From Cycas panzhihuaensis (Eukaryota; Plantae; Cycadophyta): 64,000 nt of DNA. The translations under genes and the position numbers were made by a program. Shown one piece after another: positions 5,537 through 56,300 of the stretch (positions are counted from its first letter, which is position 1; the number at the start of each line of letters is the position of its first letter). The notes under the pieces were generated by a model. It was not told the DNA's origin. It worked only from the letters and a program-made list of their open reading frames with translations, and did no database searches. Location of the stretch: the NCBI GenBank assembly GCA_023213395.1, contig CM041465.1, positions 82,963,741 to 83,027,740 of the forward strand, in the 5' to 3' direction.

Positions 5537-5549
5537 GGCAACGGAATCA
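5537..5549 (-). promoter_or_regulatory. Primer-binding site of A, complementary to the tRNA-Glu 3' end
   Basis: Plus strand GGCAACGGAATCA versus the plant tRNA-Glu 3' end GGCAACGGAACCA (recalled), 1 nt from the LTR edge. Confidence 0.8.
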
Positions 5550-5550
5550 A

Positions 5551-6359
5551 TGTTCACTTGGGGGATTATCTTATTACACTTATGAGATAAACACACTTGT
5601 CAATTACACAGATTATAGTCTAGTTAAGGATACAGTCAACATATCATCACAGAAAGTACACATACTCCTTCTTAACTTCATACCACATAGCATAATCATG
5701 TAATAACACGTAATTCAAGACACATTCAGCCATATAACACATACAATATCAATTCCACGTAACTCTTCTTTCCATTAAGCAATAAGTTTGATTACACAGA
5801 GGGTTGGAATGCATTCCTGCATTCTAGCAACATACACACTTCATTACATGCGTACCTGTGTGGTACTCATCATTATACACGGCCCAATTGGCTGTCATAA
5901 TGCATCGGCATCCACACCATTGCGTACCCTAAATATTCAACTCTCACCCTAACCGAATGGTCCTTGCGAGCTTCCTTAAATGTGCCTCTTTGTACCTTTT
6001 GGTCAAGGGTTATGATCTGTCATTACAACCGCATTCTCGATTGAAGCGACATTTTCATTAATCATTGGTTACACCTTAACCAATGCCTTAATCTCGTCAT
6101 GACGTGCACGCACGTGCTGCAACTCCCTGTGCCCCACCGGTCCCATACCGCTGCGCATCGCTCGCCTATTTCCGTTTCTACCGATGGTACGACCGTGTTA
6201 CGATCTGCTCTGCACGCACCTATCATACGCACTCCAAAATGCTAGTTTTTTCCTTCGCTTTTGCCTCGCGTGCCTCCGTATGGTCCGCATCGCACATCCG
6301 TGGTTATCCACCCCACCGGGTCTTCCAATGACCCATATGATCCAAAATATACCCCAACA
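5551..6359 (-). repeat. 5' LTR of element A
   Basis: TGTT...AACA termini, adjacent PBS, and patchy similarity to the LTRs of D (TTATGAGAT, ATTAAGCAATAAGTT, GTTGGAATGCATT, CCCAACA end). Confidence 0.8.
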
Positions 6360-23816: not shown

Positions 23817-23995
23817 CAAAGCACTCTTTGTTTCGTTATTTACAATCTACATAGAAAGCTGAATGTTGACGACATTGGCAAAGTCTATCACAAATAATGA
23901 GGATCTAAAAACATCAAACACAGTAGAAATATAGACCAATGAGACCAGAACACACTATTGCAAGAGTGACATACCTTGATATCCAACCTTGTGTA

Positions 23996-24865
23996 TGTTG
24001 ACTTTATGATTTCACACCCCTTATGAGATCAATACACTTGTCAAAGTTACACAGGTTATAGTCTAGTTTAGGACACAGTCAACATCATTATCCACATAGA
24101 TCACACAAATTTATTAATATTTCCACATGATTATAGCACAACGGCACACAACAGTACAGAGATCAGCACCTATTTCATATTCAATCCTTGCAAACACATA
24201 GAATCCATAATTTCCATGCAACTCTTATTTTATTAAGCAATAAGTTCTTTTACACAAGGTGTTGGAATGCATTTATTGTGCATTCCAGCCTTATACATTC
24301 ACTCTGTCACATGCGTACCCAGGAGGTACCCATCAAAATACACGGCTTAGGCTATTGTCATGCGTATTGGTCTCCGTACCAATGCGTACTGGTATACTTG
24401 GCTCTCACCCTAGAGAGTATGCCATAGAATTGAATCACTCAGCTCTCACACTGGAATGGTCCTCAAAGCATCATTAAATCTGTCCCTTCGATGCCTTTTG
24501 GGTGAAAGGTTATGACCCAAAGTCATAACCATACCTTTTTGTCACCAAGGTACCCTTTCACTTTAACACTTGATTAAGTCTCCTTAATGGTGTCTTTTCT
24601 AATCCGTACATCCATACATATGTCTGACATCATCCCAGGTATCCATCTGTCAGGTCCTGCCATGCGTACCTTCTTTGCTTGCGTTACGCTAGAGGTGCGT
24701 ATCGTGTTGCGTACCTTTTGCACCTTTGCATACATACCCAGAATGTTGATTTCTCCAACTTTCTGCCACATGCATACCTCTGTACGGTCCGTACCTGCAC
24801 ATCCAAGGTTATACAACCTATGTTTGGTCTCCTCATAGCCCAGCATGCCAAACTCTGTCCCAACA
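23996..24865 (-). repeat. 3' LTR of D
   Basis: Direct repeat of 29140-30020. Confidence 0.95.
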
Positions 24866-25299
24866 TCTATCCTGGGTCAACATGATTGGGTTGAGCATCC
24901 TTGCTCAACAAAAAATTCAAAATTTGGGGTATTCCTCCCCCTCTCTGTTCTAAGGCTACCTCTGCGCCATTGCTTGGTCGCCATTTTTGGTTAATAAATC
25001 CTCATCTATTGGCACTTTTGTTTTTTTTTTTTTTTTTTAAATAATGCCTTTGGCTTATTTTGTTCAACTTTCCCTTGATTTTTCGTATGATAATATATCT
25101 TTCCTCCATGCTTTACCATATTGCTTATTTGTATGATATGAGTTACGGTTGTTTTTCTATTTTTTTATTTTTCTGTATTTTATATTACATACAGAACTAA
25201 ATCACGTTCCGGTATCAAGGCAATTCGATTTTGCCTCAACTTCATGCAACACGTTATAGTACAACCAGTTGATCCGGCTGATAAGTTGCTCCACCCTAG

Positions 25300-25613
25300 T
25301 TGATGTAGGGTTTTAGTTTACTACCCTTGACCATTTCAGGCAGTAGCTAGCCTGATAGTTTCTTCAACTGGATAGTGCCATTCTGGTACACCTTCTCAAT
25401 CATATATGGGCCTTTCCAATGCATCTTCAATTCTCCTTGGGTTGTTTGGGATTTGTTGTCAAATCGCCATACTCGATCACCCTTCTTGAAATACGATGTC
25501 TTGTCGTGGCGGTCGCGCCTTATCTTTTTTCGCCTTTTTCTTGGTGTGGTATGCTTTGTCAGTTTCTTCTTATAATCCCTTAATTGATCTTGATTTATTA
25601 TTCCTTCTTCCAA
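25300..25613 (-). pseudogene. Integrase C-terminal (GPY/F) fragment of D
   Basis: FKKGDRVWRFD...LKMHWKGPYMIEKVYQNGTIQL. Confidence 0.85.
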
Positions 25614-28600
25614 CTAATGTTTTCTATAATGTATCAATTGGGAATTTCCACATAGTGGTTCTTTATAAAAGGGCTTCACATAATCTCCAACATATTCTCC
25701 ATGATTTCTATCTTCTGGAGTGGCAATTTTGTTTCCTAGACCGGAATCTCTAGGGATACTCTCAACAAGTTCCTTTTTTTCTTCCTCAAATTTGGCGCCG
25801 ATGGTTGAAAAAGATCTTTCGCTGGGTAGGTGTACCTCTAAAGAAGATGAGGAAGGTTTGTTACTTCCTTCCTTGGGTTGGGATGGGGGTGGGGAAGGGC
25901 AATCTACCTCAAGACCCACACTGGAGGTAGAGGGAAGGTTAGGGTTAAAGGGGGTTGGGATATTGGGAGGTGAATTAGGATAAGGTTTTGGGTTAAAAAG
26001 GGGATTTGGATTTGGGTCTTGGTTTTTAATGTTATTATTAACACTCATATAATCAACAAATTTAGATTTAATATCAACGTGCTTAGTTACATTCTGAGAA
26101 AGTAGGTTACACCTATAGGATGAGGGGTTGACTTCATATGCGTCCTGTAGCCAATAATCCACAAATCTCATCCCGTTTTCATCGTCTGAAGAGTTGTAAA
26201 TTTCTCCAAAGTAAGTCGGTTCTTCTTCTTGGCGGTCGATCAATTTGGTGGGTTCTTCGGCCGCGTGGTAGAGATTTCTTTCGTCGAATGAAGAAGTTGT
26301 TGTTTCACTTACGACAGTCGCATTGGATCCTTCGTCCAGTATCATCTCAATGGAGTTTCTTTCTAACATTGGTAATACCACTTTGTTTCCATCATCTGAT
26401 AAAGTGAAGGTCACGTTCTTCCAGTTTTGGAGACACTGGGTCTTGTATAGCTAGGGCCTCCCCAATAACGTTGGATAGGGTGTTGCACCCTTTTCTGTTT
26501 CTACGATTGTAAAGTCAATTTTTACAACAATCCCTGCCACATCCACTTTGATGTCGGCCAGCCTCCCCATAGGTCGCACCAATAATTTGTTGGCCAATTT
26601 CAACGAATATGTTGCTGCCTCCAGTTTCGGGCTTCCCAATTTTCGCCATGTCGAAGTAGATAGTACATTTACGGCTGCGCCCCCATCGACAATCACTTTC
26701 GGAAATGTTTCTCCTAATACCATCATTGTCACCATGGGATCCATGTTGAATGATGGCATCACTTTCATTAAACCCTTGGTAATTCCTCGTTGCAATATCC
26801 CTCCTTTAATCCAATCAATTATTTGGTATAAAGGAATAGTTAATTGCAACTGTTTCACCAGATTTTCTATCAACAACAACATTCTTGGAATGTCCTCGAC
26901 CGGTAATCCTTTGAATAGTTCCTCCATCTGTACCATTTGAGGCTGTATTTTCGGCTCTTCTAGTACCTTATCTTTCTCCTTTTGCTTATTCTTTCTTACA
27001 TATACATATTTAGTTTCTGGCTTCCCCATTGGTAATGCACTCTCTTCTTGAGCTAAGTCTTCTAACACTTGTTTCGCTTGTTTAAATCGATTCATTTCTG
27101 TCTGTGGATTCAGATATCCTTCATCTTCTTTCTCCTTTTGTTTCTTTTGGAGTTTTACATTTTTACTCTCTAGTATGATTGTCATGAGATTGGTAGCTTT
27201 AGTTTTTCCCTTACAATCTTCTGTTTTGTGCTCACTTGGTCCACAGTTGTTGCATACGAACGGTTTTTGTTCGTATTCCCATTTGGTTGGGCATTCGGAT
27301 TTTCAATGCCCAAATTGTAAGCAAATAAGGCATCTTCCCATTGGTTGTTTCTTCCTCGAGGGCTCCTGTGTATTCCTCATTGTATAAAAGTCCCGAGGTG
27401 GGTTGCCTCCCCTTCCCCTACCTCGTCCTCTGTATGATTTTCCTCTTGGGCTGTAGAAACAATCTTTTGTCATATGCGTATCCACATCGCATATGTGGCA
27501 CCATTTGTCTCTTTGGTGCAATGCTCTATTCTTCGGATTGAGTTCACATTCTTTAGTCGTGTGTGTGAACTTTCTTCACAGATGTGGCACCATTTTTCCA
27601 CTCTGCCTTCGTGATCGTTTTTCTTCTTTGTTGCTTCCTCTTCTCTGTTATTTCTTATTTTTAGTCTTGCCACTTCCTTTCTTAGGGCTTCTAATTCTGA
27701 TTCCTCTTCTGCTACTCCCACCTAGCAAAAGGGTCAATTATATTGGTGTTGTTTGATTTCCCTGATCTCTTCTTGTAATCTCAATAGGAGGGAGTCGTGT
27801 CCTCCAGCCTGCACATCCATCTCCATCTCAAAGTCAAGTGCTAAATCTTGGGCATTCTTGAATGACTTTAATGGATGTGCATGCATCATAGCTCTCAGTT
27901 TCTCATTCAGTCCTCTGACAAAATAATTTTTCATATTATGGTCTGTTACCGTTTCATTGATCATATTAGCCGCAATGATTTTCATCTTACTGATATAAGT
28001 TAATACTGGTTCTCCTGGCCTTTGTTTAATTTCCCTAAGGGCAATTTCCACTGCTTCGTTGCTTCAGAATTTTTAAAATCTTTCCTCAAAGGATTTCTTT
28101 ATTTTCGACCACGAATCTTTCTTATTTAATTCTTTGTACCATGCCAATGGTACTCCCCTTAATGTACAGGTGAATCTGGCTTTTATCTCGTCTTCATCTG
28201 TAATCTTCTTCACATCAATCAAATTTTGAAAGAGATATACATGTTTGACTGCATCCGAAGTGTCATTGAAAATCAACTTCCCAAAATCTCTATAATCATC
28301 CATCCTGGGAGATTGTATCGGTGTCCCACCTGGTGACGATTCTTCCCCTTTCTCCTCTTCACTGGATTCTATCTCCTTCTCTTCACTCTTCTCTTTTGGA
28401 GATGTGCTTGGAGTGCTTACTGCAATATTATCTTTTCCAAATAATGGATTCTTAAATGGAGTTTTAAGATGTATAGGTTCTAATACACCTGGCACTTGTA
28501 TTGTTAACGGTGTCACTGTTATATATGACTAATCAGACCCCCTATCTGATGAATCCTCAAAAAGCTGCCTTGTTAGCTTATTTTTCCAATATGCCGAGGG

Positions 28601-28999
28601 ACCTTCCTCTGCCTTCTTCTCGCTATCACTTAGGTCCTTCGGAGTGTCTTCCACAGGTATACTTTCCTCCTTTGTTAAAGTGTCTTTATGTTCTTCATCC
28701 ACTTTTGGTTTTTCTTCATATTCTGGGCTAAACAGGTCATCCTTGATTGGGGCTGGTGTTAGTACCATTCGTTTGCCATTGTTTCCCTCTCCTTGTTCCT
28801 AAGGTGTCTGGGCTCCACTTGCCTCAGATTCTTCAACGGACTGCCCCTTAGTCTCGTTATTCTGCGAACTTAATCTCCTTGCCCTTCTCAGTTTTTCCTC
28901 TTTTGACCATCGTAATGCCCTCTGTCTGCTTGTTTCTTTCCCTTTAGGTGAAGTATCCTTTTGTGGCTCTTCCGCCTTTGAAGGCCTTTTAGGTGGCAT
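25614..28999 (-). pseudogene. gag-protease of D (disrupted)
   Basis: FTCTLRGVPLAWY capsid motif, KQRPGEPVLTYI, CCHC knuckles and IVDGGAAVNVL...LLGRP protease. Confidence 0.92.
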
Positions 29000-29125
29000 T
29001 GGAAGGTCCCTTGGCTGTTGGAGGCTTAGTTATGGCCTGCCATCACGACGACAACTAGGGTCCTCTGTCCTTTACACATTCCTCCTTTTGAAACTCCTGG
29101 GCCGTGTCCCTCCTCAATGGACGTA

Positions 29126-29138
29126 GGCAACAGAACTA
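29126..29138 (-). promoter_or_regulatory. tRNA-Glu PBS of D
   Basis: Plus strand GGCAACAGAACTA. The consensus with A gives GGCAACGGAACCA, the tRNA-Glu 3' end (recalled). Confidence 0.78.
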
Positions 29139-29139
29139 A

Positions 29140-30020
29140 TGTTGACTTTATGATTTCACACCCCTTATGAGATCAATACACTTGTCAAAGTTACACAGGT
29201 TATAGTCTAGTTTAGGACACAGTCAACATCATTATCCACATAGATCACACAGATTTATTAATATTTCCACATGATTATAGCATAACGACACACAGCAGTA
29301 CAGAGATCAGCACCTATTTCACATTCAATCCTTGCAAACACATAGAATCCACAATTTCCACGCAACTCTTATTTTATTAAGCAATAAGTTTTTTTACACA
29401 AGGTGCTGGAATGCATTCATTATACATTCCACCCTCATACATTCACTCTGTCACATGCATACCCAGGAGGTACCCATCAAAATACACGGCTTAGGCTATT
29501 GTCATGCGTACTGGTCTCCGTACCAATGCGTACTGGTATACTTGGCTCTCACCCTAGAGAGTATGCCATAGAATTGAATCACTCGGCTCTCACACTGGAA
29601 TGGTCCTCAAAGCATCATTAAATATGTCCCTTCGATGCCTTTTGGGTGAAAGGTTATGACCCAAAGTCATAACCATACCTTTTTGTCACCAAGGTACCCT
29701 TTCACTTTAACACTTGATTAAGTCTCCTTAATGGTGTCTTTTCTGATCCATACATCCATACATATGTCTGACGTCATCCCAGGTATCCATCTATCAAGTC
29801 CTGCCATGCGTACCTTTGATGCCTGCTTACGTTCTACCAGAGGTACGTATCTGTGTTACGTACCTTTTCAAGTACGCACCTGTCATACGTACCCAGAATG
29901 TTGATTTCTCCAACTTTCTGCCACATGCATACCTCTGTATGGTCCATACCTACACATCCAAGGTTATACAGCCTATCTTTGGTCTCCTCATAGCCTAGCG
30001 TGCCAAACTCTGTCCCAACA
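29140..30020 (-). repeat. 5' LTR of D
   Basis: Direct repeat of 23996-24865, adjacent to the PBS. Confidence 0.95.
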
Positions 30021-30399
30021 ATGTAGGGTAAGGAAATCAACATCATTGAACAACCTTGCAAGACTAAAACATTCCTACAAATAATGTGAGCTTAGGCTAT
30101 GAAATATAATCTTGTATATTTTTACATAAATACAACCTTGAATTACTAACTTTGAAAGGAACTTAATGACATTTAATTCTTTCATCATTTCATTGGAGCA
30201 TCATAGTCCTTTAGCATACCAATCTAAGATCCATTGTAGTAGCCTAGGCTAATTTCCTAACAACTATCACCCGACCACTGAACCCTACGGATTTTTTTGA
30301 GAACCCAAGCAAACTTTAGAAACCTAGAAGACCAAATCTCAACTAACAATATTGATTGATAAGAAGTGAAGTGCTATTATATTTCTCTCATCTATTTAT

Positions 30400-31830
30400 T
30401 ACTTACTTTATTTTATCTTTGCCTTCTCAATGAGGGATATTTATCTACTACCCAATCCCCCTTGTTAAAAGTTTGTTTAGATTGGTTTTGGTTAGCTTGT
30501 TGCTTCATCTTGCTCTATGCTTGTGCTAAATTATCCTTCAAACTATCATTTATTTGATGAGAAGACATGATGAGATCTTCGATGAGTAGTATCTTGATCT
30601 TGTGTTGGATGCAACTAGAAACATTGGGTGGATCATAACTATACAAGGCCTCGAATGGTGTCATTCTAGTCAACATGTAGTATGTTGCATTATACAACTA
30701 TTCTGATAAAGGTAGGCAATGTGCCCACTTGCTTTGAGTGTTGACTAAAAAACTTCTTAAATATCCCTCTAGACATTTGTTGACCAACTCTAAGTTATTA
30801 TTTATTTGTGGATGGTGCTTATTATTAATGTTGTGCCTATGATCCTGAAGAGATCCTTCCAAAAATGACTCAAGAATTTGGGGTCCCTACCATTAGTGAT
30901 GATTTTTGGAAACCCATGTAGGTGGTGAATGTCTTTCATGAAAAGCCTTGCAACTTGGATTGCCTTGTAGGTGGACAAGATTCCTAAACAACACGTGCAC
31001 TTGGTTAATCGGTCTATAACCACAAAAATGTAGTCATTTCCTTTTGACTTTAGCAACCTTATGATGGAATACATCGATATATCGTGCCACTTTTGGATAG
31101 GAATGGGTATAGGTTGCAACAATCCTTGAGTCTTTACATTGATGGTCCTTTATTTCTAACAGGTGCCACACTCTGCCACATACTTATGGGAGTCCCACTT
31201 CATTCCTAAATAATGGAATGATTTCTAGATCCTTTTATAGATGTTAGGGAGCCCTATACACTCCACTATGGTTGTGGTATTGCATTCCTCCATTATCATT
31301 GCCTTAAATGTTATGGTTGGGATAAGAATAATGCACCCTTGATGCTAGCGCAAATTACTTTTCCATTCATATTTGTCTAACTAGTTGCCTCCTTCTTGTA
31401 TTTCTTGAATGGTCTTGGAGACTGTCATCTAAAGGATATTCTTGCCATGCTTTCTCGCTCCAAGTTAGGGCAATGACTAAGATGGCTTGGATCTTGGTGT
31501 CCTTGTCTTGTCATGATGAGCCATTTTCTTCCCTATTGAGGGTCTTTGTTTTGTCTATAATTTCAAAGTCAAAGACCTATATCTTACTCACCTATTTCTA
31601 TTGTTTAAGAGATAGCAATTTATGGTACATGAAGTATTATACACTGTTGTGATTTGTTCATACTAGGAATTTGTTGTCTATTAGATATTACCTCCATTTA
31701 CATATGGCATGTAGAATTGCTAACTTCTCTTTATCATACATTAGCTTAAGTTATTCCTTTGCATTTAGCTTTAGGCTTTCAAAGGTGATGGGTGCCTCTT
31801 CTTGCATGAGAACTACCCCTAAGTAATTTG
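30400..31830 (-). pseudogene. Decayed chromoviral gypsy RNase H-integrase fragment
   Basis: LQPIPIPIQKWHDISM, FVVIDRLTK, GRDPKFLSHFW and MTPFEALY. Confidence 0.85.
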
Positions 31831-42644: not shown

Positions 42645-44900
42645 CTTACACACCTCAACAAAATGGAGTTGTTGAGCGTATGAATTGGACTTTGATTAGC
42701 AAAAGCAAAGCCATGCTTATTGCAAAAAAAAATTGGAACTTCAATTATGGGATGAAGCCCTTAACATAACTACTTATCTCAGAAATCAAAGTCTAATCAA
42801 GACAATTTTAAATATTATACCCAAGGAGGCTTCGTCACATCAAAAACCTATGGTCTCATATTTGTGCACCTTCGATTGTACAACATATATTCTTATATTA
42901 AAAGAACAAAGAAAAAAGTTGGATGACAAAAGCAGGAAATGTATTTTCATTAGCTACCAGCCTAGTTGCAAAGCCTACAAACTTTATGATCTTGCTACTA
43001 AGCAAATGTATATATCTCAGAATGTAATTTTTTCAGAAGAGAACCGGGACTTGAACATGACTCAACTTTCATTTTCTAATGAACAATTTGCAGTAACTCG
43101 GTTCCACCTGCTACTACACAGAATGTTCCTACAGTTCAATTGCCTCCATCATCATCATATACACCTGGTACTACATCTGCACTCCCGCCTCTACTTCAAC
43201 ACTCACTTTACTAATTTCTTCAAAAGATGTTCAAGAAGAGGTCATTTCAAAGCAACTTCCCAAATGGTACTTGTAGACTATCTTTTCCGCTCTATCATCT
43301 CTACAACAATCAATGAAGCAATCCAAGTACATGTCATCCACCAACTTTGCTTTAATGGCAAAAGTATTATCATCTCTTGAATCTACCACTTTTGAAGAAG
43401 TTGTTGGAGATCAAAAGTGGCAAGCAACCATGAATGAGGAAATGGATTTCATTTTGCTAAGTAACACTTGGGAGCTAGTTGAGTTGCCAGATGGAAAGAA
43501 ACCAATTGATTGCTAATGGATTTATGAAACAAAATTTCATACAGAATTCTTTATTCAATGCTCAAAGCACGATTGATTTCCAAAGGTTTCAAATAGATTG
43601 AGGGCATCGATTATGATGAGACATTTGCCCCTATTGCCAATAACCACTATGAGGCTTGTTTTGGTTTTAGCAACTCAATTTAATTGGCATGTTTTCCAGA
43701 TGGATGTGAAAAGCATATTTTTAAATGGCGACTTATGGGAGGACGTTTACCTAAATCAACCTCCTGGCTATGGTGGAAAAGAACATCTAGTTTGCAAATT
43801 GAAGAAGGCTTTTTATAGCCTTAAACAATCACCTCATGCTTGGTACGCGAAGATAGATGAGTATTTTCAGAAGCATGAACTTGTATGTTCATCCTCGGAT
43901 CCCAATTTGTACATCAGAATTCAAGATAACTTGATCACTCTAGTTGTGTTGTATGTTGATGATTTGCTAATAACAAGTAATGACATAAAGTGGATTTCAT
44001 ATCTTCAAGGAGAATTAAATAGCAACTTTGAGATGACTGACCTTAGGTTGCTCCACTATTTTCTTGGCATAAAAGTCTTAATAGTATCCAGGTCACATCT
44101 TCTTTTTATAGTCCAAATATACAATGGAGATTTTTCAGAAGTTCATAATGGAGGAATGTAATCCATTGCCAACCCATATGGAGACTGGACTTAAGCTGAA
44201 TATTGATGAGCATGGTAAACTTGTCAATCTCACTTTGTATAAGTAACTTGTGGGGAAATTAATTTACGTCACGCATACTTGACTAGATATTTCATATGTT
44301 GTTGGGATCCACTCTAGGTTTATGACACAACCCAAGATTTCACACTGGAAAGCAGCTTATGTAGATCTTGAGATATCTTCGAGGTTCACTTCAATTTAGA
44401 CTTGATTACTGCTAGGTGGATAATCCTTCTTTAACAGGTCACACGGATGCTGATTGGGTTGGTTGCAAGGATAATCGTAGATCAACCTTAGGCTATTGCT
44501 TTAACCTAGGTTCTACCTCTATTTTATGAAGTTGTAAAAGCAGCCAAATGTCACCTTGTTCTCTACTGAAGCAGAATACGAAGTTGTACTTAGTGTAGTT
44601 ACAGAGGCTATTTAGTTAAGAAGGATTTTTTAAGAGTTTGGTGTTAGTCAAACGCAAATTACTACCCTCTTCTATGACAATCAGAGTGTCCTCAAATTAA
44701 CTAAGAATCCTATACTCCATGTGAGAACAAAGCATATCCAGGTTCATCATTGCTTCATTAGGAAGCATGTTCAAGATTGTGAGATTGATTTGATTTACAA
44801 GCCGATCGACGAACATATTGTTGATATCTTCATCAAAGCACTTAATCGTGACAAATTCAAACTGCTCAACATGGCCTCAGAATCAGAATTAATGAGCTTA
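42645..44900 (+). pseudogene. copia E integrase C-terminal part, RT and RNase H
   Basis: Resumes at YTPQQNGVVERMN. Contains KLDDKSRKCIF, NTWELVELP and YVDD. Confidence 0.92.
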
Positions 44901-54168: not shown

Positions 54169-56300
54169 GAAATAAAACAGAAGTTTCAATACCATAATTA
54201 TTTCCTTTGTTAAGGAAGGACAAGCATACCATTTGTTAATTGATTTTAAGGGAAAACTAGCAATGTTATAATCAATTGAAGTTGTATGTTGTCTATATCT
54301 TATTCTAATTCATATTTATGTAAATATCCTTGGCCATAATAATGGAATTTACTTCTAGGCAATTCAAATATCATCAATTCCTTTTCATATTTTATATTCA
54401 AACTTCATATTTCCTCTTTTAATAAAAATTTGTCTAGGGATGGCATGTTTGCTTTTCTATCAAAATTTCCATTAGAGAAGTGCAAAATTTGAATGTTGAC
54501 TCTTGATTTTTGATGATGAGATCAGTTAAACTTACCTTAAAATAACAATCTCTGGTTGGCATTAATAAATCTTAATCATGGATGCCATAATAATAAAATC
54601 AATATATACCACTTATCAAGACTGAATATAGGGTGGTCATATTTCGATTAGAACTTGCAGCACATTGTGATATTGGCAATTTGTATAGGTTTCTCTGATT
54701 CAATGTTGGCTTGTAATCAAGTAAATCAAATCTGAAGTGTAAGTCCAATTTTAATGACATACATCTCACAACTGATAAATCTGTAAGGCGAATTCAAAGT
54801 ATGCAATGGATGATACTTTTCAGGAACAAAAGATTTGTTAAGTATCCATTGAGATTTGTTTGGAGAAGTTCATGTGATACACATTTCATTTTAAAAGGAC
54901 ATAAGGGTCCAAATACAAAATGCATTTTCTCTCTACTATTTATCAGTGAAAATGAAAGAGATGGTCAAAACAACTCGAAAAATAGAAACAAAGTGAAAAT
55001 GAGAATAGAAGAAAAAGATCATTAACTTATAGAATTATTAAAAACTTGGGATGAGTAGTCAAGATGCACATCATGTTATTACAATTTTCAAGAGTGCATC
55101 ATTAGTGGATATTTCAAACTTTTTAATTAGGTTTCTTTTATTAAACTTTTATGTTTGTCAACCTTGTCATATTCTCGCTTATTTCTTAGGTGTTTGAATG
55201 TTCTTTGGGTTAATGGCCCACTATTTCTTATTCTTTCTTGTTCTCTCATTGTAAAACATAAGACTTTTTTAATGGACTTTCATTGTTTTCTTATATGCAT
55301 AGGGTGCAATTATTTAAATGACTTTTATAAGCCTTGATCCATAGTGTTTTGTATATGTAGGCTCTTGGTCATAAATCAATGTCAGTGATGGTTGGGCCAT
55401 ACAGAGGATGAAGGAAAGAGAGGAGATTTTTGTTAAGATAGAGGATCAAGATGAAAAAGCACTTAATCACATAGATTAGGATTAGGAGATCAATCTTTTC
55501 ATTAAAAATTGTCACCTTTTCTTCCCCTATTCTTGTATAACTGCAATCTTTGGACTCGAGCAATTTGCATAATGTAAAAGTAGTTGGAAACCAAAATTTT
55601 AACCTCATTTTGGTCTAGCTGGATTTGCAGAGTCCATACTTAAATTTGTAGATAAGCCATAGTCTTGGCACATGTGTCTTCTAGCTCAATTGTTTCTAGT
55701 TTACATCTATCAAGTCTTTAATAATACAATCCTTTTATCTAATCTTTTGTTGCAAGTTGCCCTTAATTTCTGTTGCTTGGCATATGTACTCTAATTTTTC
55801 CATTAGTTGCCAAGGGATGCATCCAGTGGTTGCAACACATCCCATCTAAGCATATTTAACTAGTGGTTAATAGATTCAATTTATTTCATATAATTAAAAA
55901 TATCAATGAAATAATGATAATTATCTACCCAAAATTAGTGTGTAAACTGAGTTCTAAGCACTAGATAGTGAAGCCGCTTTTCCTTTATTACATAAACCAA
56001 TTGTTATAGCTCCAAAAACCTACTACTAGATTACACCAAAATTTCTACCTTTCCTTGTCTTCTTAGACCTTCAAAGCCAAAATTTCTACCTCCTTTTCAT
56101 CTAGATGTACTTCGTAAAGTCCACACTTGTTTTTGTAGGTAAGCCATAGTCTAGGCATGCAACTCTTGTATATTACTTAATCGTTTTCAGTTTAGCATCT
56201 TCTTGTCTAATCCTTTGTTGCAAGTTGGCTTTGGTTGGTGCTACTCGGCTCTTGCTTTTAGATCATTTCTTCCATTGTTATTTCTATTTAACACCTCTTT

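Follow-up and report, generated by a model that had tools for sequence, protein, structure and literature searches.

The locus considered here raises a question about the priming of reverse transcription: do the LTRs of a plant retrotransposon carry, in addition to the short primer-binding site (PBS) beside them, further segments of the very tRNA that acts as primer, and if so, what might these segments do? The window (the whole stretch of 64,000 nucleotides that was analyzed) holds a minus-strand element, D, and a diverged relative, A. A first-pass annotation had proposed that boxes within the LTR match the primer, tRNA-Glu(CUC), and that one tRNA bound at the PBS could also pair with U5 and R, thereby bridging the ends of the element RNA. 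As to origin the answer is plain: the LTR segments derive from tRNA-Glu(CUC), the same tRNA as is matched by the PBS. As to role, the best explanation, to which we give a probability of about 45%, is that this primer-derived sequence serves as a set of auxiliary tRNA contacts, by analogy with Ty1, Ty3, Drosophila Gypsy and HIV-1.

The element and its relative

Self-BLAST of the window pairs positions 29139-30020 with 23995-24865 at 94% identity: these are the LTRs of D, and they give the following layout.

29140-30020, minus strand: 5' LTR of D, 881 nt, with U3 at the high-coordinate end (from self-BLAST, termini and flanking duplication)
24866-29125, minus strand: internal region of D, with Pfam matches to Retrotrans_gag and an aspartyl protease only, and without reverse transcriptase (RT), RNase H or integrase
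23996-24865, minus strand: 3' LTR of D (from self-BLAST and termini)
5551-6359, minus strand: 5' LTR of A, the diverged relative; its identity to the LTR of D is 58%

The LTR termini of D read TGTTG...CAACA and the flanks are GTGTA and ATGTA, a 5-bp target duplication in which four of five positions match; position 29139 is a 1-nt spacer that separates the 5' LTR from the PBS. D thus has the marks by which a Ty3/gypsy LTR retrotransposon is recognized, namely an LTR pair ending in TG..CA, a target duplication of 5 bp and a PBS 1 nt from the 5' LTR. In A, RVT_1 is followed by RT_RNaseH_2 (Pfam, 202-1206), as in Ty3/gypsy elements, and both are downstream of a part homologous to gag. The open reading frames of A in that part have no Pfam match, and its integrase would lie beyond the start of the window. 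In the gag region and leader A is approximately 80% identical to D, and the homology ends near position 25585 of D, short of the RT of A. Since D retains only gag and protease and its resemblance to A stops before the RT, D is a non-autonomous deletion derivative; as such it must keep its cis signals. A and D are members of a very high-copy Ty3/gypsy family that is primed by tRNA-Glu(CUC) via a 13-nt PBS.

Segments of the primer tRNA in the LTR

As a source for the reference tRNA, metagenome contigs were searched with a degenerate box 2 pattern in which two suspect positions had been loosened. At least 120 contigs matched, and nearly every match was called by ARAGORN as a tRNA-Glu(ctc) gene. 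The commonest of these genes (73 nt; for example L003:14626-14698:+), which come from plant-like metagenome contigs and are not the host's own, carries the D-loop TAGTTGGT and is equal, in that D-loop variant, to the plant tRNA-Glu(CUC) that the first-pass annotation had used. Independently, a poplar small-RNA table contains a 20-mer that equals the opening 20 nt of this gene (PMC4189724). Local alignment of the reference tRNA plus CCA against the window identified the following segments.

29126-29138, minus strand: PBS of D, complementary to tRNA-Glu nt 64-76 including CCA; 11/13 here, 13/13 in the family majority
29199-29220, minus strand: box 1; in the element RNA, the complement of the 5' acceptor strand plus D arm (tRNA-Glu nt 4-28), from which three D-loop bases would bulge out
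29538-29560, minus strand: box 2, a 21/23 complement of the entire anticodon arm (tRNA-Glu nt 25-47, anticodon CUC); a tandem unit in its first copy
29581-29593, minus strand: box 3, a 13/13 complement of tRNA-Glu nt 27-39; the tandem unit (~43 nt) in its second copy, at the predicted transcription start
24055-24076, minus strand: box 1 in the 3' LTR (local alignment)
24394-24416, minus strand: box 2 in the 3' LTR (local alignment)
24437-24449, minus strand: box 3 in the 3' LTR (local alignment), 12/13
5537-5549, minus strand: PBS of A, 12/13 to tRNA-Glu nt 64-76
5613-5633, minus strand: box 1 of A, matching tRNA nt 5-28; the 3-nt gap seen in D is shared
5933-5949, minus strand: anticodon-arm box of A, single and decayed, 14/17 to tRNA nt 25-41

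The coordinates previously assigned to the 13-nt PBS and to the three boxes of the 5' LTR were all returned by the alignment, including the 21/23 match of box 2 to the anticodon arm and the 13/13 match of box 3. The recurrence of the boxes in the 3' LTR was also recovered at the expected positions, with the correction that box 3 matches there at 12 and not 13 of 13 positions. A, moreover, carries box 1 and one decayed anticodon-arm box, in keeping with the earlier statement that the boxes are common to the A/D family.

Every box and PBS match lies on the plus strand in tRNA sense, which makes the minus-strand element transcript complementary to tRNA-Glu. The boxes carry CTCTCAC (the CUC anticodon loop) and so match the same isoacceptor as the PBS does. 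Box 1 departs from the tRNA by the 3-nt gap, at which D-loop bases are left out, and by two transitions, both G-U compatible as had been claimed; the two differences in box 2 are true mismatches rather than wobbles, and disrupt the pairing. Boxes 1 and 2 follow the order of the tRNA, share 4 nt of it (tRNA 25-28) and lie 317 nt apart. Judged from these alignments, the LTRs hold a now-split copy of primer tRNA nt 4-47.

The top three alignment scores in the LTR are 36, 26 and 25. Dinucleotide-shuffled LTRs gave means of 17.3, 15.7 and 14.9 and maxima of 24, 22 and 19, and none of 300 reached the observed values; when 300 shuffled tRNAs were aligned to the LTR instead, the maxima were 25, 21 and 18. 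The extra element-sense complementarity of boxes 1-3 to other parts of the primer tRNA is therefore beyond chance (0/300 shuffles). Elsewhere in the 64-kb window, beyond A and D, no tRNA-Glu alignment scores above 27. The window has other tRNA-Glu-like matches, such as a 13/13 match to the T arm at 43044-43056 (minus strand) and one at 56231-56252, but each stands alone; a search of 128 kb is expected to yield matches of this level, and they were set aside as chance.

Several simple origins of such a pattern were considered and rejected. An intact or pseudo-tRNA gene in the LTR is excluded: ARAGORN finds no tRNA gene in the window, and Rfam gives none at E values up to 10 in 28800-30600, the stretch searched. 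A Pol III promoter of the Helenus type does not fit a segment that has no contiguous tRNA, no B box (GGTTC) and no T-arm match in the LTR, that is antisense, and whose pieces lie 317 nt apart. Simple primer read-through does not fit either: in A as in D, complementarity at the PBS extends no further than 13 nt, and one reaches the boxes only 60 nt and ~400 nt into the LTR. Finally, self-BLAST and inspection by eye revealed no convincing similarity of the kind expected from a decayed T arm after box 2/3 or from an LTR-dimer origin.

Conservation and variation within the family

Contigs of four runs from four organisms were aligned to the LTR, yielding between 1301 and 9333 pieces per run; with thousands of LTR pieces in the runs of four organisms, the family must be very abundant and shared among related species. 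In all four runs the family majority differs from the window copy at two positions of the PBS (29132 A>G and 29137 T>C), and with these changes the PBS becomes a perfect 13-mer: the window copy thus carries two private mutations. Among the best-supported 40 of 153 variable sites, none falls inside the 58 nt of the boxes, an absence that hints, if weakly, at box conservation. The mismatches of the boxes to the tRNA appear to be fixed across family members, whose PBS nonetheless stays perfect.

Boxes 2 and 3 are two copies of a unit of ~43 nt whose number is variable: pieces with the joints 29593>29557 and 29593>29540 were found, together with loose ends at 29556 that continue like A. The unit is present as a single copy in A, and as one to three or more tandem copies in the family. 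Such variation in unit number fits slippage as well as it fits selection.

If the boxes have been retained, they should have diverged less than the remainder of the LTR. Overall, the LTRs of A and D are identical at 515 of 892 positions (58%). For box 1 the figure is 19/22 (86%), which lies at the 93rd percentile of 22-nt windows, and the identical run within it, TTATAGTCTAGTT (13 nt), is the second longest A-D identical run in the LTR. The core of box 2, CTCTCACCCTA (11 nt), is identical in A and is the joint fourth longest such run; over the core A and D agree at 15 of 19 positions, after which box 2 can no longer be aligned. On this comparison, which covers two lineages, the boxes are conserved islands above the LTR average. 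The conservation of boxes against flanks that the first-pass annotation had proposed as a check is accordingly seen (86% for box 1 against 58% for the LTR, in two lineages only); the accompanying expectation that changes would be mainly G-U compatible is not borne out, since by hand count this is true of 5 of 9 substitutions, which is not significant. The best conserved A-D block of the LTR is U5 29164-29229, which extends 35 nt past box 1 into sequence that does not resemble a tRNA; the U5 conservation thus includes parts that owe nothing evident to the primer. Because A and D share both the 3-nt gap of box 1 and its G-to-A change, gap and change are older than the A/D split.

Searches for further copies of the family added little: neither the box 1 pattern nor the RT of A had a match in viral contigs, and a search with the gag open reading frame gave one protein only.

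A candidate stem in U5 and predicted pairing with the tRNA

Box 1 is directly adjoined by one arm of a 9-nt inverted repeat, the other arm of which includes the LTR terminus.

29221-29229, minus strand: inner arm of the U5 stem, AGTCAACAT on the plus strand; its partner is the LTR terminus, 29139-29147
29139-29147, minus strand: outer arm of the U5 stem, ATGTTGACT on the plus strand; includes the LTR terminus

The 9-mer occurred in 25 of 20000 shuffles. The 11-nt run that contains the stem arm, ACAGTCAACAT, is identical in A, and the stem is present in the minimum free energy fold of D and, with one mismatch, in that of A; the stability of the whole fold is no greater than that of shuffles in either element. 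The predicted stem would enclose box 1 and end, in the RNA, 1 nt before the PBS, and so would set the two tRNA-binding stretches side by side.

Predicted duplex energies, calculated for unmodified tRNA, are -29.8 kcal/mol for box 1 of D, -31.2 for box 1 of A, -39.7 for box 2 and -24.2 for the consensus PBS. Cofolding of the U5-PBS RNA with tRNA-Glu (again unmodified) agrees with the earlier suggestion of tRNA pairing in U5: the pairing chosen is that with box 1, whose duplex has an energy of approximately -30 kcal/mol against -24 for the PBS. With predicted duplexes so strong and so near the PBS, it is very probable that primer and box 1 are paired within the particle. That such pairing may also be useful is suggested by the stem, the conservation and the success of the family.

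A TATA-like motif and the predicted ends of the transcript

The position of boxes 2 and 3 within the transcript depends upon where transcription begins. The TATA-like motif previously reported is read directly from the sequence.

29618-29624, minus strand: TATA-like TATTTAA, ~30 nt upstream of box 3 in element sense

Its counterparts are GATTTAA in the 3' LTR of D and CATTTAA in A. Box 2/3 sits 25-80 nt downstream of the motif, and the stretch from motif to boxes (GAATGGTCC ... TTAAAT) is common to A and D. From the position of the motif, the transcription start is inferred to lie at box 3, and the borders of R and U5 are placed to match. If TATTTAA is a promoter, then the anticodon boxes open R and each RNA end has a set of them. 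Over the LTR, a run presumed to hold RNA (X15) shows the depth profile of the DNA runs.

Boxes as possible auxiliary primer contacts

The observations can be drawn together in a scheme by which the primer tRNA was reverse-transcribed and the copy entered the LTR. Such capture would account for an orientation that is the same as that of the PBS and for boxes 1 and 2 being collinear with the tRNA with a 4-nt overlap. It would have left a copy of nt 4-28 in U5, 60 nt upstream of the PBS and beside a 9-bp stem formed with the LTR terminus, and copies of nt 25-47 some 30 nt downstream of the TATA-like motif, probably at the start of R and hence at both RNA ends.

In operation, a Gag chaperone would open the primer tRNA, allowing its 3' end to anneal to the PBS. 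The freed 5' acceptor strand and D arm would then anneal to box 1 to give a bipartite initiation complex, the parts of which the U5 stem would hold together. The anticodon arm could also pair with the boxes in R; if it did so in the 3' R, the two RNA ends would be joined for minus-strand transfer. Strong-stop DNA annealing out of register in a repeated R would, in addition, explain why the number of units varies. 

In favor of the multipartite interpretation advanced by the first-pass annotation are the tRNA origin of the boxes, their orientation, their presence in A, a conservation above the average and the strong predicted duplexes; against it, box 2 is decayed in A, the mismatches of box 2 break pairing and the number of units is variable. 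The full version, in which the family, dominant in a giant and probably gymnosperm genome, captured cDNA of its own primer tRNA and thereby gained tripartite recognition, we regard as unlikely, and hold it less firmly than the general proposal of auxiliary contacts. Its three parts would be the 13-nt PBS, a box in U5 that a stem presents to the tRNA's 5' acceptor strand and D arm, and, where R starts, repeated anticodon-arm boxes by which the tRNA would bridge the RNA ends for minus-strand transfer. On this version, spreading complementarity over several sites, with a short PBS, could also lower exposure to silencing of the 3'-tRF type: for an 18-nt 3' tRF, 11-12 of 18 positions match, or 13 with the family-consensus PBS.

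Alternative explanations

The closest competitor dispenses with function, and we consider it nearly as likely as auxiliary contacts. On this account a reverse-transcribed piece of primer entered the LTR of an ancestor (for example by primer read-through followed by a shift of the priming site or of the LTR border), was later split by ~317 nt and partly duplicated, and is now decaying with no role. A passive relic of primer reverse transcription is expected to share the orientation of the PBS, and boxes 1 and 2, collinear and overlapping at tRNA 25-28, look as if one copy had been split. The two to three mismatches per box are what ~10% neutral divergence would produce; box 2 of A has decayed, and that of D has mismatches which interrupt pairing. 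Variable numbers of the tandem unit, box mismatches that seem fixed while the PBS is perfect, and substitutions without a wobble bias all sit comfortably with the same account. It is less at ease with the finding that, in LTRs only 58% identical, few runs of A-D identity are longer than those in the box cores, and with the precise placement of box 1 beside a significant stem that adjoins the PBS. Nor are the boxes contiguous with the PBS, as the product of a simple read-through would be, and duplexes with predicted energies of approximately -30 kcal/mol, so near the PBS, could hardly be without effect on the primer complex.

A second possibility, which we consider improbable, is that the segments have some other function in the LTR, their tRNA ancestry being incidental. 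The anticodon unit might be a core-promoter element, an initiator, a repeated enhancer or the start of R, and box 1 a U5 signal for packaging, dimerization or integrase. Tandem repeats near promoters are common in LTRs, and the position of box 2/3, 25-80 nt downstream of the TATA-like motif with an intervening stretch shared by A and D, suits such a role, as does U5 conservation that reaches 35 nt beyond box 1 into non-tRNA-like sequence. What this leaves unexplained is that the match is to the element's own primer tRNA, that it has the orientation required for pairing, and that it occurs in two separate places.

More improbable still is that the boxes are target or decoy sites for small RNAs from tRNA-Glu (5' tRFs or tRNA halves) that either silence the element or are sponged by it. 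The idea has precedent in the 19-nt 5' tRFs that cleave gypsy transcripts in Arabidopsis (PMC5605234); the poplar 20-mer noted above (PMC4189724), which begins where the tRNA-Glu gene begins, shows a small RNA of the appropriate kind, and box 1 provides 13 contiguous pairs. Under a scoring scheme modeled on psRNATarget, the program used in that Arabidopsis study, with the cut-off of 5 taken from PMC5605234, a 19-nt tRF-5 nevertheless scores 5.75 on D and 6.0 on A with seed positions 2-3 unpaired, which places this alternative, raised in the first-pass annotation, just outside the published limit. Box 2, moreover, crosses the anticodon loop and fits neither tRNA half, and a site that favors the host is not expected in the consensus of a hugely successful family. 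Chance similarity, or a misremembered tRNA, has only the short length of box 3 in its favor and is negligible: real tRNA-Glu(ctc) genes are called by ARAGORN, 0 of 300 shuffles reach any of the scores, and the boxes recur in the diverged A.

Significance

The feature is real, statistically solid and unusual: a variant of the extended-PBS theme if it is functional, and otherwise a well-preserved fossil of the primer. Extra contacts between primer tRNA and template have so far come from a handful of yeast, fly and retroviral models, and in the literature searched we found no description of them in plant retrotransposons. If the contacts work, they are unusually long and are recognizable copies of the tRNA, and so would show how such sites originate, namely by capture of the primer through reverse transcription. 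With thousands of copies in several related species, the family could provide evolutionary statistics that the model systems lack, and could throw light on the means by which a single lineage filled a giant genome. Even as mere fossils, the boxes would document that reverse transcriptase copied its primer and that tRNA sequence passed into LTRs in this way, and would be a source of false tRNA-like or tRF-target predictions.

Comparison with known systems

The nearest parallels are in yeast. The bipartite 5'-3' PBS of Ty3 and the extended PBS of Ty1 (boxes 0, 1 and 2.1) combine a short PBS with further stretches of the element that are complementary to other arms of the primer tRNA; in Ty3 the extra stretches are in the LTR-derived 3' end and are able to bridge the RNA ends (PMC5371799). 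The family described here is similar in having a short PBS (13 nt, against 8-10 nt in yeast) and extra complementarity to the same tRNA (PMC5371799). It differs in its primer, which is tRNA-Glu(CUC) and not tRNAiMet, and in the regions matched: in yeast these are the T and D arms, here the 5' acceptor strand plus D arm and, separately, the anticodon arm in full. The stretches here are also much longer (22-23 nt), are clearly tRNA-derived and lie inside the LTR, in U5 and probably R.

Drosophila Gypsy, likewise an element of the Ty3/gypsy type, has two binding sites for tRNA-Lys,2, at the 5' and 3' ends, and the tRNA bridges the ends in vitro; its second site, one stretch of 11 nt, lies outside the repeat and is dispensable for cDNA synthesis (PMC1635307). 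Here, in contrast, the LTR itself contains sites of two kinds, of which one is repeated in tandem.

In HIV-1, Piekna-Przybylska et al. (2010, NSMB 17:83) reportedly found that a U3-R segment resembles the tRNA-Lys3 gene, and are said to have proposed that captured tRNA sequence promotes minus-strand transfer. In that case, too, a sequence embedded in the LTR reportedly resembles, and is complementary to, the element's own primer tRNA. One is a human retrovirus and the other a plant retrotransposon; the similarity is far stronger here (21/23 and 13/13), and the tRNA's 5' half has a box of its own in U5.

Small-RNA-derived sequence within LTRs is shared, too, with Helenus / TRIMp3 and Cassandra, often non-autonomous elements whose LTRs contain tRNA-like or 5S-like sequence (PMC10886601). 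In Helenus, however, the tRNA-like unit is contiguous, has A and B boxes, is presumed to be a Pol III promoter and is not complementary to the element's own PBS (PMC10886601), whereas the tRNA sequence in the present family is in pieces, has neither T arm nor B box, runs antisense to the element and comes from the very tRNA that serves as primer. The tRF-5 target sites of plant gypsy elements, finally, are places where element RNA is complementary to the 5' end of a tRNA (Martinez et al. 2017, PMC5605234). Element RNA pairs with a tRNA 5' end here too, but with a score just outside the cut-off, and the complementarity continues through the D arm, well past 19 nt.

Structure of element D and its LTR borders

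Element D, the minus-strand Ty3/gypsy element whose LTRs lie at 23996-24865 (3') and 29140-30020 (5'), is wholly without RT, RNase H and integrase. The final ~720 nt of its internal region, adjoining the 3' LTR (24866-25585), have no counterpart in element A, a diverged relative in the window, and gave no Pfam match.

In both LTRs of D the motif GTCAACAT(G/C)ATT follows box 1, the stretch in which the element RNA is complementary to nt 4-28 of the primer tRNA-Glu(CUC); in the 5' LTR it occupies 29222-29233. A further copy (11/12) is found just beyond the 3' LTR at 24876-24887, 10 nt from the U3 edge, with that LTR to one side and a purine-rich tract (~24925-24945) to the other. It may be what is left of a former LTR border, or of a region that primed plus-strand synthesis. 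Close to the LTR terminus, on its inner side (29149-29151), the window copy reads TAT, whereas the family majority reads ATA (present in 4/4 sequencing runs), a 3-base, inversion-like difference.

Other repeats and tRNA-like sequences

Between 48807 and 54070 a unit of ~2.7 kb stands in direct repeat (94-96% identity), with several repeat families at a spacing of 2730-2771; it is unrelated to the tRNA-Glu boxes in the LTRs. An isolated 13/13 match to the tRNA-Glu T arm (nt 53-65; 43044-43056, minus strand), with no tRNA-like sequence in its surroundings, is probably due to chance, given the size of the search.

Two of the metagenome contigs that supplied reference tRNA-Glu(ctc) genes carry loci called 'tRNA-Lys(ctt)' by ARAGORN (L022:5593-5664 and L024:3652-3723), each with an intact tRNA-Glu gene ~250 nt away. 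These are plainly mutated copies of tRNA-Glu(CTC), that is, tRNA pseudogenes, typed wrongly because the anticodon is mutated.
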